64,000 nucleotides of DNA from IMGVR_UViG_3300042879_006196:248001-312000, one strand, 5' to 3'. Shown: positions 17,891 to 62,970, counted from the stretch's first letter. Notes: generated by a model from the sequence alone, not told the origin. A program made the numbers and translations.

Positions 17891-18205
17891 TTAGTAAAGG
17901 TCATTTTTTTCATACACATAGAGATTAATTTCTTCTGTTAAGATTGTGTGCGTGGGATTTTCTTCGGGAAACAATATTGGCGACACAAATGGTTTTTGTG
18001 TGACGATGTTTGAAAATTTTAACACACAATTCGTATCGTCTCCATTTTTGAATTTTTCATAAACATCCAAGAATTTTTTATCTATTCTTACCTTTGAGCC
18101 AAAAACAAAATGTTTTTTTGCCCCTCCATATAGCTCATTTAAAATGTCGCAACCTTCTTCTAGCGTTAAAATTTGTTTTAATTTCCATTTATCAAAAACA
18201 TTCAT
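17891..18205 (-). CDS. hypothetical protein
   Basis: 104-aa ORF divergent from groEL; ATG 7 nt after TACAAA. Confidence 0.55.
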   Translation of the reverse strand: MNVFDKWKLKQILTLEEGCDILNELYGGAKKHFVFGSKVRIDKKFLDVYEKFKNGDDTNCVLKFSNIVTQKPFVSPILFPEENPTHTILTEEINLYVYEKNDLY

Positions 18206-18211
18206 AAAAAA

Positions 18212-18223
18212 TTTTGTACAAAA
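18212..18223. promoter_or_regulatory. palindromic bidirectional -10-like element TTTTGTACAAAA
   Basis: TACAAA on each strand is 7 nt from ATG 18230 (+) and ATG 18205 (-). Confidence 0.6.
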
Positions 18224-18229
18224 TAAAGT

Positions 18230-19849
18230 ATGCCAGTTAGTTTATTATTTGCTGAAGAAGCTAGAAAAAAGTTAGAAATAGGTGTAAATATGGTAGCAGA
18301 CGCTGTTAGGGTTACCTTGGGTCCAAGAGGCAGAAATGTTGTAATTTTCAGTGAACATGGAGCACCAATTATAACTAAAGATGGTGTAACTGTAGCAAAA
18401 GCTGTAGATTTGGAAGAACCCTACGAAAATTTAGGGGCGCAGTTGTGCAAACAAGTAAGTATGAAAACAAATGATATTGCTGGCGATGGGACAACAACTG
18501 CAACTGTTCTTGCACAAGCAATTGTAAAAGAGGGATTGAAATATGTCGCTGCTGGTGGAAATCCTCTAGGCATAAAGAGAGGAATTGACAAAGGATTAAC
18601 AACAGCTCTTGCATTGATAGAAAATTGTGCAAAACCAGTGAGTGATAGGCAAGAAATTGAGTATGTTGCTGCTATTTCAGGTAATGAGCAAGAAGTGGGG
18701 GTTGTTGTAGCGGATGCTATAGAAGCTGTAGGCTCAGATGGAATCATTACACTTGAAGAATCTAAAGAAAGAGAAACTTACTTTAGCATGGTTGATGGTT
18801 TTTCTTTCAACCAAGGTTTTATTTCGCCTTACCTTATTTCTGATGTGGCTAAAAATTTAGTAGATTATAGAGACGTTACCATTTTGATGTTTGATGGTCA
18901 AATTGAACGCTTTGAAGTATTGATTCAAGCTCTCGAAAAAGCCGCAAAATTAAAAAAACCCATCCTTGTTATTGCAGAAGGTTTTACTAAAGATGCAATT
19001 AACGGTTTTGTTATTAATAAAACCAGAGGTGGGTATCATTGGGTTGCAACAAAAACTCCAGGATTTGGGGAGCAAAAGAAAGAAATGATCCAAGATATTT
19101 GTGCTATGGTCGGCGGAAAAGTGTTCAATGAAAGCATTGGACATAAATATGATGAAATTGACGATAGCTTTTTTGGATTTGCTAAGCGTGTTGTTGTTGG
19201 AAAAGACAGCACGACAGTCTTGGAAGGTAAAAGCGATCCTGTTGTTAGGGGTGAAAGAGTAGAATTACTTAAGGCTATGCTTGCAGGGGAAGAGTCAGAT
19301 TATAATCGTGAAAAATTAAGCGAAAGATTGGGTAAATTAAATGGTGGTGTTGGTTTAATTAAAATTGGCGCCTCTACAGAAACTGAACTTAAAGAAAAAA
19401 GATATCGCTATGAAGATGCATTAAACGCCACAAGAGCCGCAATTGATGAAGGTATAGTCCCTGGTGGAGGAAGTTGTTTGCTCAGAATTTCAGATTTACT
19501 TGAAGATAGAACCACTGTTGACGAAAGGGACGAAGACGAAGTTAAAGGGCTAAGAATTCTTGCACACGCCATGAAAGCACCTTTCAGGCAAATTTGTACT
19601 AATGGAGATTTTTCACCAGATGTTTTTGCTAGAAAGGTATTAGAATCTGAAGGTTCTGTGGGATTTGACGCAAAGTATGGTGATGTTTGTGATTTATTTG
19701 AAAGAGGAGTGATTGATCCAGCGAAAGTTACTAAAACAGCCTTGACAAACGCAGTGAGTATTGCAAGTTTGGTTTTAACTACTGAAACTCTTATTGCACC
19801 AATTATAGATAAAAGCGAAAAGGTTTTAGTGTCTGAAGGCATGTTCTAA
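18230..19849 (+). CDS. groEL: group I chaperonin GroEL
   Basis: [51 protein letters not shown] motifs; no GGM tail. Confidence 0.97.
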
Positions 19850-19863
19850 CGTATATTAATGAT

Positions 19864-20400
19864 ATGAAAGTTAAAATGGGCAACAAAATATCTACTCTAA
19901 GCAAAGATGTAGTTGCATGTCACATGGCAAATTTCTTAAGCACAAGAGCGATTGTCTTGGGTAAAGAAAAAATATTTAAAGTTGCCTTCAATAAATACAA
20001 ACAGTTATGTTCATTATTTTTGAGAGAAAATAAAAAGTTTGTTTATGAATTTGGCGATGACAAATGGTTAGAAAAATTTATTGCTTTTCAATCAAAACAG
20101 CATGAATTAGCTTTACAAGAAATTTATTTCAAGTTCAGTGATGGTTCAGAATGGACTATCTTTTTACATGATATAGCTAATTTGAAAATGCTTTATGAGC
20201 CAGAAGAAAAACATGATAAATTTAAGTTATTAGAAAAACCTGTTGAGTTAGCAGATTGGGCGCAAAACAAGCTTACATGGGAACAAGTAAAAGATTTTTC
20301 TGTTTTGAGAAAAATTTCTGGTAACGAATCATCGTATATACACGAGTGGGCAGATGTAAAAAAACAAGTTCTGCAATATAAGTATGAAGCTGAAGACTGA
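19864..20400 (+). CDS. hypothetical protein
   Basis: 178-aa ORF; TATATT 6 nt before ATG. Confidence 0.55.
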   Translation: MKVKMGNKISTLSKDVVACHMANFLSTRAIVLGKEKIFKVAFNKYKQLCSLFLRENKKFVYEFGDDKWLEKFIAFQSKQHELALQEIYFKFSDGSEWTIFLHDIANLKMLYEPEEKHDKFKLLEKPVELADWAQNKLTWEQVKDFSVLRKISGNESSYIHEWADVKKQVLQYKYEAED

Positions 20401-20962
20401 TCTTTTAAATCCAAAAAACTTCAATCGCACACAATCTGAGCTTGAAGAATTTCTTTTATTATGCATATTTGTTGCAGGCAAAAGTAGTAAAACACAATAC
20501 AAAAAATTAGAATTATTTTTAGACGAACTAGATACTACTAATGGAATTTTTGATGCTTTATCTAAACTTTCTATTGATGAAATCAAGCAAAAATTAATTA
20601 AAGTAAAAGCTGGGCAATATAGCAGATTGTGTGGTTGTTTGTTTATTTTGTCTAGAAAAAATTTAGATCTTCAAACATGCACATGTGAAGAATTAGAATC
20701 AATCCCAGGCATAGGAATGAAAACCTCAAGGTTTTTTATCACTTATTCAAGGTTAACAAATAGTTATGCTATTTTAGACACCCACATTCTGGCTTGGTTA
20801 AAAAACATTTACCCAGATGCTCCAAAAGCCACACCTTCAAATAAAAAAGAATATTTGAAGTATGAAAAATTTTTTCTTTCTGAGTGTTTAAAGAGAAATT
20901 TACCTCCGCATGAGTTAGATTTACAAATTTGGAAAGAAAGGCAAAAATCATGGAAAGTTTAG
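20384..20962 (+). CDS. HhH-GPD superfamily DNA glycosylase (Ogg2 / endonuclease III-like)
   Basis: Helix-hairpin-helix LESIPGIGMKTSRFF followed by AILDTHIL (catalytic Lys/Asp positions). Confidence 0.75.
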   Translation: MKLKTDLLNPKNFNRTQSELEEFLLLCIFVAGKSSKTQYKKLELFLDELDTTNGIFDALSKLSIDEIKQKLIKVKAGQYSRLCGCLFILSRKNLDLQTCTCEELESIPGIGMKTSRFFITYSRLTNSYAILDTHILAWLKNIYPDAPKATPSNKKEYLKYEKFFLSECLKRNLPPHELDLQIWKERQKSWKV

Positions 20963-61661: not shown

Positions 61662-61711
61662 ACACTATTTATACACCAGGAAAATATTGATGATAAGTTT
61701 AAATTAATAAA

Positions 61712-62506
61712 ATGGATAGAATTTCAATGATCAAATGCTGCAATGATCTTGATAAAAATGGTTTTTTTAAAGAATCTGAGTTGATAGAAAATTTCATAAA
61801 ACTATCCGCTATGCCTTTAGGAAATGATTTAAAAGATACAATCAGGAATTTATTACCTCCCTCTGCAAAAGCAATCTTTGATAAATACTTACCTCCTAAA
61901 AAAACACAAGCCCCTGCACCAAAACAAAACCAAAAATCACTAAGAGAGAAAATATTACAACAAAGAAACAATCCTCAAATACCTTGGGGTAATTATGGCA
62001 AATTTAAAACAAAGCTTGAAAAGTATGAGGGCGGTTTATCTAATAGACCACTTAAAGATGACCCTGGTGGATTAACTAACAAAGGCGTGACAGATGTAAC
62101 ATATAACAGATGGAGAAAAAGTAAAGGGCTAGGATATAAATCTGTTAGATATATCACTGACGAAGAAGTTAATCTTATCACTAAAAACTTATATTGGGAT
62201 CAAATTAAAGGCGATTTTATTCCTCATCCAATTGCAATAGTTTTAGCAGATTGGAAATTCCTTGGTGGTAGTCCTGTACAAGAATTACAAAAATTGATTG
62301 GAGTAAGCCCTGATGGTTTAATGGGCACAGCAACTGTGAAAGCTTTGTGGAGATACACTGGTCGTGATAATGAAAAAGCTAAACAGCTTGCTTTGAAATT
62401 ATTAGATTCAAGAGAAAAATATATGAGAAAACTTCCAAATGCAGCCACTAATGGAGGTTGGTGGATAAGATTGGATGACATGAGAAAAACAATTAGGGCT
62501 TTGTAG
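61712..62506 (+). CDS. GH108 lysozyme (glycosyl hydrolase 108 plus peptidoglycan-binding region) with an N-terminal extension
   Basis: YEGG......DDPGGLTNKGVT, Y...YWD, LQ..IGV.PDG..G..T, GWW.RL. Confidence 0.85.
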   Translation: MDRISMIKCCNDLDKNGFFKESELIENFIKLSAMPLGNDLKDTIRNLLPPSAKAIFDKYLPPKKTQAPAPKQNQKSLREKILQQRNNPQIPWGNYGKFKTKLEKYEGGLSNRPLKDDPGGLTNKGVTDVTYNRWRKSKGLGYKSVRYITDEEVNLITKNLYWDQIKGDFIPHPIAIVLADWKFLGGSPVQELQKLIGVSPDGLMGTATVKALWRYTGRDNEKAKQLALKLLDSREKYMRKLPNAATNGGWWIRLDDMRKTIRAL

Positions 62507-62654
62507 AAGTTTTTTTGAGTGCTTCGCTAATTTGTTTAAAAATCTCATCTATATCTTCTGGCTCAACATCCTCAAAAGTGTTGTCATTTAAGGTTATTGA
62601 AATTTTAACATTCTTGTCTTTTTTTCTAAATATATTTTTAATTTTTTCCCACAT
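62493..62654 (-). CDS. 53-aa hypothetical protein absent from the ORF track
   Basis: MWEKIKNIFRKKDKNVKISITLNDNTFEDVEPEDIDEIFKQISEALKKTSTKP; ATG exactly 6 nt after the minus-strand TACAAT. Confidence 0.6.
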   Translation of the reverse strand: MWEKIKNIFRKKDKNVKISITLNDNTFEDVEPEDIDEIFKQISEALKKTSTKP

Positions 62655-62660
62655 GATGTA

Positions 62661-62670
62661 ATTGTACAAT
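62661..62670. promoter_or_regulatory. palindromic bidirectional -10 element ATTGTACAAT
   Basis: 6 nt to ATG 62677 (+) and 6 nt to ATG 62654 (-). Confidence 0.7.
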
Positions 62671-62676
62671 CATAAC

Positions 62677-62970
62677 ATGGAAAGTTTTCAGAAAGATAGA
62701 AATATTACTGAAATTCCCATTCACCCCACTTATGAAAAAAAAACTGATGGTCATCTTGAGTGGTATAATCATTTAGATTCTATTTACTTTTTTAAAAACC
62801 AAAATGAACTTTTTGATTGTTTTTTTATTATCTTGAACAAAAAAATTTATATATCCTATAATGTTAGAAATAATCTTTCAATAGATTTCATGAAATTTGT
62901 GAAAATCACCGCCCCCACTAATATCAAAGATAAAAAAAGAAGAATATATAAACCCACAAAATTAATGTAA
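62677..62970 (+). CDS. hypothetical protein
   Basis: Start reassigned from TTG 62662 to ATG 62677. Confidence 0.45.
   Translation: MESFQKDRNITEIPIHPTYEKKTDGHLEWYNHLDSIYFFKNQNELFDCFFIILNKKIYISYNVRNNLSIDFMKFVKITAPTNIKDKKRRIYKPTKLM

Follow-up and report, generated by a model that had tools for sequence, protein, structure and literature searches.

Overlapping -10-type boxes as candidate bidirectional leaderless promoters in an uncultured jumbo phage

Introduction

Bidirectional bacterial promoters that result from the symmetry of the -10 element show preferred separations between the two transcription start sites (TSSs), namely 18 bp, which is the commonest, 23 bp and 10 bp (10.1101/2020.01.31.928960; PMC12825309). 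Here we analyze a recurrent palindromic junction between head-to-head genes, in each case probably a pair of -10-type promoter boxes on opposite strands, in a 64,000-nucleotide stretch of DNA (hereinafter, the window) that covers approximately positions 248,001-312,000 of IMGVR_UViG_3300042879_006196, an uncultured freshwater jumbo phage of 347,392 bp.

Described counterparts of these junctions include leaderless starts. In the genomes assigned to the leaderless 'group C' by GeneMarkS-2 (Actinobacteria, Deinococcus-Thermus), operon-first genes have a Pribnow box 6-8 nt upstream of their starts, and internal genes carry a ribosome-binding site (PMC6028130). Among phages, the divergent promoters PL1 and PR2 of the Cluster O mycobacteriophages are predicted to be leaderless, so that the start codon would form the very 5' end of both transcripts (PMC4351075). 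In the promoters of the virion RNA polymerases (RNAPs) of AR9 and phiKZ, 6 nt separate the consensus from the TSS (PMC5312081); the untranslated regions (UTRs) of AR9 are 26-491 nt long, and leaderless transcripts are absent from phiKZ (PMC5312081, PMC8244752).

Six palindromic junctions between head-to-head genes

The 10-bp palindrome TTGTACAA occurs six times in the window, each copy in a spacer of 20-24 bp between head-to-head start codons. A previous reading of the window by a model from the sequence alone (hereinafter, the sequence-only reading) had reported all six; both the positions and the distances to the two start codons, read from the flanking sequence, are as it gave them:

18213-18222, TTTGTACAAA, inside a 14-bp palindrome (18211-18224), between a 104-aa gene (start 18205, minus strand) and GroEL (18230, plus strand), spacing 7/7 nt
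30969-30978, ATTGTACAAT, between a 262-aa gene (start 30962, minus strand) and a 228-aa gene (30985, plus strand), spacing 6/6 nt
33633-33642, ATTGTACAAT, between a DegT-type aminotransferase (GTG start 33626, minus strand) and a 221-aa gene (33649, plus strand), spacing 6/6 nt
41794-41803, GTTGTACAAC, between a HAD/cupin gene (start 41787, minus strand) and a methyltransferase (41810, plus strand), spacing 6/6 nt
44563-44572, ATTGTACAAT, between a 236-aa paralog of the 30985 gene (start 44556, minus strand) and an FkbM methyltransferase (44577 or 44580, plus strand), spacing 6/(4 or 7) nt
62661-62670, ATTGTACAAT, between a 53-aa open reading frame (ORF; start 62654, minus strand) and a 97-aa gene (62677, plus strand), spacing 6/6 nt

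The first bases of the two start codons are separated by 23 bp at four of the six sites (30962/30985, 33626/33649, 41787/41810 and 62654/62677), by 25 bp at 18205/18230, and by 21 or 24 bp at 44556/44577-80, where 44580 is the more likely start of the FkbM methyltransferase. The left start at 33626 is a GTG (CAC on the plus strand, 33624-33626), as it is in relatives. The left partner at 62654, an ORF of only 53 aa, has no independent support, although the gene caller also predicts it, along with the 97-aa gene, in L312, a contig of the same genome from another sample that is 100% identical over window positions 59174-64000. In general, the start codons are credible because catalytic or nucleotide-binding motifs are found within the first 10-20 residues of many of the products (GxGxxG at 47298, DxDG at 41787, GxGTRL at 39234, HRG at 25500, and the GroEL N-terminus) and because, in nine sequences of the GroEL junction, conservation starts exactly at the ATG.

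The raw count of TTGTACAA is not unusual (six copies against 3.0 expected; at least six in 11 of 100 shuffles), and when the spacing is 6 nt a TTG within the palindrome lies 15 nt (5 codons) upstream of the ATG and in frame with it. Both observations would fit the view that the palindromes are chance matches, restriction or methylation sites (TGTACA), or unrecognized TTG starts, with no role as promoters. The placement of the palindrome, however, is not random: divergent spacers make up 510 bp (0.8%) of the window and contain all six copies (P ~2.6e-13), and the full pattern CA[TC]-N5-8-TTGTACAA-N5-8-ATG is observed six times against 0.02 in 300 Markov simulations. With placement probabilities of ~3e-13 for the palindrome and 1e-17 for the directional box described below, junctions that are conserved in relatives, and 20 copies of TGTACA in the window, which is neither depleted nor enriched, the probability of this explanation is negligible. 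The TTG codons were specifically rejected as starts, given that they are followed by stops at 30985 and 41810 and are out of frame at 18230 and 44577, that is, at 4 of the 12 starts. Their position 15 nt upstream of the ATG explains the ORF-track starts that read 'MYN', the origin of which the sequence-only reading had likewise sought in the palindrome.

A directional box in front of operon-first genes

The functional unit at these junctions is not the palindrome but a directional 8-mer, TGTA[C/T/A]AA[T/A/C], that ends 6 (5-8) nt before the ATG. Its extended consensus is aaT-TGTA[C/T/A]AA[T/A/C], with the most prominent positions, counted with the A of the ATG as +1, being G-13, T-12, A-11, A-9, A-8 and T-7. 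Within the window, the box is also found at no fewer than nine starts that lack the palindrome:

9532-9539, plus strand, box with leader TGTATAAT, 29 nt before ATG 9569 of a virion structural gene, with a GGAGG Shine-Dalgarno (SD) sequence in between
25486-25493, plus strand, single box TGTATAAT, 6 nt before ATG 25500 of a 143-aa GDPD-like gene
29473-29480, minus strand, single box TGTATAAT, 7 nt before ATG 29465, a putative internal promoter of a minus-strand sugar operon
39243-39268, two separated boxes in a 40-bp divergent spacer: TGTATAAT (minus strand, 39243-39250, 8 nt to ATG 39234) and TGTACAAT (plus strand, 39261-39268, 6 nt to ATG 39275)
47277-47291, back-to-back boxes with 1 bp in common: AGTATAAT (minus strand, 6 nt to ATG 47270) and TGTAAAAT (plus strand, 6 nt to ATG 47298)
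59518-59525, minus strand, single box TGTATAAA, 6 nt before ATG 59511
61668-61675, minus strand, single box TGTATAAA, 6 nt before ATG 61661 of a dTDP-4-dehydrorhamnose 3,5-epimerase

The motif TGTA[ACT]AAT is present in 27 copies on the two strands of the window, and 15 of these are intergenic, although intergenic DNA makes up just 2.5% of the window (P ~1e-17). All but one of the 15 face a start codon, 13 at a distance of 4-8 nt (10 of them at exactly 6) and one, the box upstream of 9569, at 29 nt. With A or G as the first base the association is almost lost, only one of the 32 copies of [AG]GTAnAAT in the window being located at a start, whereas TGTAnAAT-N6-ATG is observed 10 times against 0.48 in simulation. 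The box is characteristic of the first genes of operons: it occurs 4-8 nt before 20 of the 39 operon-first genes as opposed to 3 of the 29 internal genes (p=6e-4), and SD-like motifs show the opposite distribution (3 of 39 and 9 of 29, respectively; p=0.02). An alignment of start codons that was blind to the motif reproduces this division, with the G-13 T-12 A-11 A-9 A-8 T-7 signal detected in operon-first genes only and G enriched at the SD position of internal genes. Across the 21 aligned boxes, T-12 and A-11 are invariant, and the base at -7 is T in 14, A in five and C in two; the box thus conforms to the Pribnow pattern TAnnnT (T-12, A-11, T-7), in the same register as in the motif-blind alignment.

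The end of the box 5-8 nt before the start codon coincides with the position of an SD sequence, and non-SD ribosome-binding motifs are known in some phyla ('group B', PMC6028130), so that the box could be imagined to act on RNA, as a ribosome-binding or translation-enhancing element of leadered mRNAs. The distribution of the box makes this highly unlikely. A translational signal should serve internal genes too, but only 3 of the 29 have the box, and they use GGAG-type SDs or start-stop overlap. At 9569, the box is located 29 nt upstream and is followed by a strong SD, and so is the CGTATAAT variant upstream of 48264. Furthermore, with spacers of 22 bp the promoters proper would be pushed into the neighboring coding sequence, where nothing is conserved, and the motif itself matches the Pribnow consensus.

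The palindrome is readily understood in terms of the directional box. ATTGTACAAT is the sole sequence in which two TGTAnAAT boxes on opposite strands overlap by 6 bp, and hence the palindrome is the tightest packing of two directional boxes. Accordingly, the description of the palindrome as one shared -10 box, proposed in the sequence-only reading, has to be revised, because the central TA is all that the two hexamers have in common. The overlap also accounts for a difference in sequence: the G-13 of one box dictates a C in the other, at the third position of the hexamer, where the constraint is weak, so that the palindromes read TACAAT, whereas the isolated sites mostly read TATAAT.

Conservation and rearrangement of the boxes in related phages

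Syntenic relatives of the phage, common in freshwater lake metagenomes, show 51-92% protein identity. Those compared here are L153 and L154 (78% identity of the probe protein), L155 (66%), L157 (51%, with 35% GC) and a set collected with GroEL, L159-L172 (71-100%). Nine sequences of the GroEL junction (71-100% GroEL identity) share an invariant TGTACAA, and the two spacers vary in sequence while remaining 6-7 nt long. Counting the window together with eight loci from relatives, 15 of the 21 copies of TTGTACAA have on either side the start of an ORF no shorter than 60 aa, and the exact architecture is also found in a 316-kb relative (L002) at a gene pair that is not homologous to any pair in the window. 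Homologous sugar genes are present in a SAR11-like single-cell genome (L158) and in a T4-like contig (L156), neither of which displays the box pattern.

At orthologous junctions, each box stays 6-7 nt from its own start codon while the arrangement of the boxes relative to each other changes. The arrangements include the 22-bp overlapped palindrome, a 30-bp back-to-back form (TTTATACAATTGTATAAA), separate boxes in 34-40-bp spacers, and 18-bp spacers (TGTATATATACA, CGTATAATTATACA); further overlapped forms within 18-bp spacers occur in L157 and L312. Individual junctions compare as follows:

33626/33649 (DegT): 22-bp overlapped palindrome in the window, with an identical core in L153 and L154; two separate boxes in a 36-bp spacer in L155
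30962/30985: overlapped in the window, L153 and L154; separate in L155 (TTGTATAAT ... TTGTACAAA), with a 38-bp spacer
39234/39275: boxes separated in the window and L153; 18-bp back-to-back palindrome TTTATACAATTGTATAAA in L155
41787/41810: GTTGTACAAC in the window, ATTGTACAAT in L153, a change on both arms
25500, single box: TGTACAAT in L153 and GGTATAAT in L155, each at 6 nt

Taken together, the half-sites at orthologous junctions overlap by 6, 4 or 1 bp, form back-to-back pairs with 2 bp in between, or lie 7-10 bp from each other. The motif, its strict association with operon-first starts, its fixed distance from the start codon, its conservation despite the drift of the spacers and the free rearrangement of the boxes are all directly observed.

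In two relatives, the symmetry extends beyond the boxes. Perfect palindromes of 42 bp (L155, 19239-19280) and 30 bp (L153, 20192-20221, around ATTGTACAAT at the ortholog of the 41787/41810 junction) extend across both start codons into the first coding bases of each divergent gene.

The perfect dyad symmetry of the six sites naturally brings to mind an operator, that is, a site where a dimeric DNA-binding protein of the phage or the host would co-regulate both genes from outside their true promoters, a possibility that the sequence-only reading had mentioned. Consistent with an operator, both variants in the window (TTTGTACAAA and GTTGTACAAC) are symmetric, the difference between GTTGTACAAC in the window and ATTGTACAAT in L153 affects both arms, and the 30- and 42-bp palindromes are perfect. 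The claim that both arms change together thus holds for GTTGTACAAC but fails at the GroEL junction, where the outer palindrome positions in relatives are often asymmetric (T..T or G..T), and at other orthologous junctions, where the boxes are separated. A dimer would not be expected to tolerate half-sites that are overlapped at one junction and abutting or up to ~20 bp apart at its ortholog, with no fixed distance between them, nor does an operator explain lone half-sites located before unidirectional genes at the same 6-nt distance. There is also no other conserved upstream motif that could serve as the true promoter (canonical two-hexamer promoters number 118 in the window versus 115±11 in shuffles), and Pfam detects no helix-turn-helix regulator in the window. 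The asymmetric outer positions and the separated boxes in particular make a dimeric regulator very unlikely. The constant distance between box and start codon, combined with the changing relation between boxes, points instead to two independent promoters, each tied to its own start codon.

Matching junctions in cellular genomes

When 185,579 species genomes were scanned for the 28-nt pattern CAT-N6-ATTGTACAAT-N6-ATG, at least 120 loci were obtained. Among the matches listed, 16 have ORFs of at least 60 aa extending from both ATGs, and 9 of these 16 come from metagenome-assembled genomes of Patescibacteria or Saccharibacteria (L202, L205, L206, L210, L221, L246, L250, L257 and L264), in which TAnnnT is also found 6-7 nt upstream of the starts of neighboring genes. 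Such lineages seem to be rich in leaderless genes and to use the same bidirectional arrangement. The architecture is accordingly not unique to the phage and presumably can be read by cellular sigma factors.

About half of the matches to the 28-nt pattern in viral contigs were rejected as junctions because the pattern there belongs to an in-frame coding stretch of one conserved gene (GVLAQCHVNIVQLKDEVEF; CHVNIVQLKDE) with third-codon variation. A relaxed form of the pattern contributed little more among the viral-contig matches listed. The contigs with the coding stretch are:

L004, L009-L011, L013, L015-L019, L021-L023, L025, L026, L029-L031, L035, L037, L041, L043

Proposed mechanism and the polymerase that might read the box

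We consider it likely that each palindrome comprises two copies, one per strand, of a directional -10-type box that functions without a -35 element and gives rise to leaderless mRNAs. The two 8-mers overlap by 6 bp, and each box ends 6 (5-8) nt before its start codon; under this scheme, an RNAP bound in either orientation would initiate at, or within 1-2 bases of, the A of the ATG and so produce a leaderless mRNA; and the two orientations, occupying the same DNA, would be mutually exclusive at any moment. The reader would be the host core polymerase with either the host primary sigma factor or a sigma factor encoded by the phage. We infer that the box is read as a promoter at the DNA level, that the TSS coincides with the start codon and that the host core polymerase is the enzyme. 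The bidirectional leaderless promoter put forward in the sequence-only reading is borne out with respect to boxes on both strands about 6 nt from the starts and the lack of room for an SD, as judged by sequence statistics and by the relatives; its leaderless character is a prediction.

Several features weigh against this interpretation. No -35 element is conserved upstream of the 21 aligned boxes, and canonical sigma-70 two-hexamer promoters (118 versus 115±11 in shuffles) are not enriched in the window. The TG of the box abuts the hexamer, at -14/-13, rather than occupying -15/-14 as in a canonical extended -10 element, and at -7, where a T is as a rule better conserved than any other base, roughly one site in three has A or C. 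Given the absence of the -35 element, the offset of the TG and the variable -7 position, reading by the standard sigma-70 is not assured. Leaderless translation, including that initiated at GTG, would moreover have to be within the capacity of the host. Finally, the two symmetric variants in the window and the 30- and 42-bp perfect palindromes in two relatives represent more symmetry than independent boxes need. In the two relatives, the excess suggests inverted duplication or template switching, or else selection on the 6-nt spacer, where wAAAC/AAACT recurs before the ATG.

The sequence-only reading had recommended a search for a phage sigma factor, and such a gene does lie beyond the window. 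About 7.1-9.0 kb past its 3' end, the 11929-13814 region of L312 contains three relevant genes:

NusG homologue, 176 aa (TIGR00922, 165 bits, above the cutoff), preceded by CGTATAAT-N6-ATG
sigma factor of the extracytoplasmic function (ECF) type, 13227-13814, 195 aa (TIGR02937, 80 bits versus a cutoff of 42.9)
232-aa protein with a weak sigma-like match

The genome also contains a second class of boxes, CGTATA[A/T][A/T], often located 5-6 nt before the ATG or farther upstream with an SD leader, which precede genes for nucleotide metabolism, DNA-related functions, NusG and ClpP:

window: 19850, 48227, 48883, 50799, 54484, 58537 (minus strand)
L312: 5288, 12621, 13815, 17584
L313 (a strain variant): 4929

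This class may mark another temporal class of genes or another sigma specificity. Its CGTA resembles the -10 consensus of the SigW type in those four bases only. ECF sigma factors normally require a -35 'AAC' element, and no such motif (an 'AAC' 16-17 bp upstream of a 'CGT'-type -10) was detected in either the TGTA or the CGTATA class.

The mechanism might be the same and the promoter class nevertheless phage-specific, being read by the ECF-type sigma factor or the 232-aa sigma-like protein and not by the host primary sigma factor. The phage encodes the ECF-type sigma factor and the NusG homologue, the box breaks the rules for sigma-70 (TG abutting the hexamer with G-13, invariant A-9 and A-8, variable -7, no -35), and the CGTATAWW class upstream of nucleotide-metabolism and transcription genes suggests that two promoter specificities exist. 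These arguments make a phage-specific reader a possibility, albeit a doubtful one, because the -35 element that ECF sigma factors normally need is absent from both classes, the identical 28-nt architecture is found in cellular genomes, chiefly of Patescibacteria, with cellular sigma factors alone, and the box does not distinguish among auxiliary, chaperone and structural genes, being located upstream of all three. The nearest NusG clusters, from Bacteroidota and Pseudomonadota, do not identify the host and can be taken as leads only, and phiKZ-type split RNAP genes were not seen in the ~90 kb of the genome examined. On a more speculative and rather unlikely variant, a phage sigma-like protein would read TGTAyAAT, the palindromes would act as coin-flip switches for pairs of glycan-modification genes, and the 30-42-bp junctions would be renewed by inverted duplication; if so, each infected cell or each round of initiation would express one arm of a gene pair or the other.

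Gene content of the window

The window has a GC content of ~31% and, with an intergenic share of 2.5%, very densely packed genes. In addition to virion structural genes, one of which encodes a 2,792-aa protein, it encodes GroEL, ClpS, SpeD, S-adenosylhomocysteine hydrolase, a deoxynucleoside monophosphate kinase, a DprA-like protein and an endolysin; tRNA genes were not found in the window. Positions 24000-47300 form a dense island of genes for nucleotide-sugar synthesis, aminotransferases, epimerases, and fucosyl-, glycosyl- and methyltransferases, organized in many short divergent operons with frequent strand switches. This island probably builds or modifies a glycan. Two paralogous genes, 30985-31671 (plus strand, MEFTFGIC..) and 43846-44556 (minus strand, MDFTFGIC..), each start 6 nt from a palindrome; their homologues are widespread in large phage contigs and are also found in the SAR11-like single-cell genome.

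Other features include:

1160-9538: the 2,792-aa ORF, with internal repeats of ~156 nt at 88-91% identity (off-diagonal BLAST of L313 against window 1787-3481); L313 encodes a 2,636-aa version, so that the repeat number differs between strains
23560-23590, between the convergent genes 23542/23604: a strong intrinsic-terminator-like hairpin GACCAGC..GCTGGTC followed by a T-run
58575-58590: 16-bp palindrome ACGATAAATTTATCGT upstream of a secretin-like gene (58612)
L312 10001-11218, just past the window in the phage genome: an IS605-family OrfB/TnpB (Cas12f-like) gene

No cultured relatives were detected among GenBank phages by DNA or protein searches, in which GroEL gave generic matches, the 361-aa protein none, and the 450-aa virion protein only weak matches to cyanophages. 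Scans of viral contigs with single window proteins returned only the contig of the phage itself, and in the ESM Atlas the 834-aa and 941-aa proteins yielded no polymerase lead.

Implications

Should the proposed mechanism be correct, the 22-bp junction, with two promoters, no UTRs and no ribosome-binding sites, would be about the smallest complete two-gene control region known, and the symmetry model of bidirectional promoters would extend to doubly leaderless messages. Leaderless expression would then be a mainstay of a jumbo phage lineage, used for auxiliary glycan, chaperone and metabolic genes, and would also provide a clue to the host, expected to be proficient at leaderless translation. 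On the practical side, gene callers would gain a start-codon rule for such phages, under which the TTG starts that read 'MYN...' are artefacts, and the junction would be a natural template for compact bidirectional expression cassettes.

Comparison with known promoter systems

As in the promoters described by Warman et al. (10.1101/2020.01.31.928960; PMC12825309), the -10 elements on opposite strands of the phage junctions have base pairs in common, and the two orientations of the polymerase are predicted to exclude each other. At four of the six sites, where the start-codon A's are 23 bp apart, simple arithmetic pairs T-12 on one strand with A-11 on the opposite one and, with TSSs as predicted, places these junctions in the 23-bp class. 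The bidirectional promoters of Escherichia coli, by contrast, are pseudo-symmetric and leadered, with 18 bp as the commonest separation, whereas the phage element is a perfect 8-10-bp palindrome that is reused many times, with both transcripts predicted to be leaderless and an entire intergenic region of 20-24 bp. An overlapped, doubly leaderless palindromic promoter was not found described in the literature searched.

Among phage promoters, PL1/PR2 of Cluster O is likewise intergenic, and each of its divergent transcripts is predicted to begin at the start codon, but it consists of separate SigA-like -35/-10 promoters in a longer AT-rich spacer, without overlap and at one locus per genome. 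The AR9/phiKZ and T4 late promoters resemble the phage box in being a single AT-rich element ~6 nt from the start point, with no -35; the motifs differ. The T4 late promoter is the octamer TATAAATA near -10, whereas the palindromic sites of the phage read TACAAT, and TATAAATA is encountered at only a few TGTATAAATA sites (61668; L155 19265; L157 10652).

The junctions also match the leaderless starts of group C, in which the same dual start model is seen, with the box at operon-first starts and the SD on internal genes. The phage differs from the group C genomes in its 31% GC, in the additional conserved TG that abuts the hexamer, and in the frequent occurrence of the boxes as overlapping divergent pairs. 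The palindromic junction is thus not a new principle but a very compact version of known promoter types, in which bidirectional promoters with -10 symmetry are combined with leaderless starts of the group C kind.

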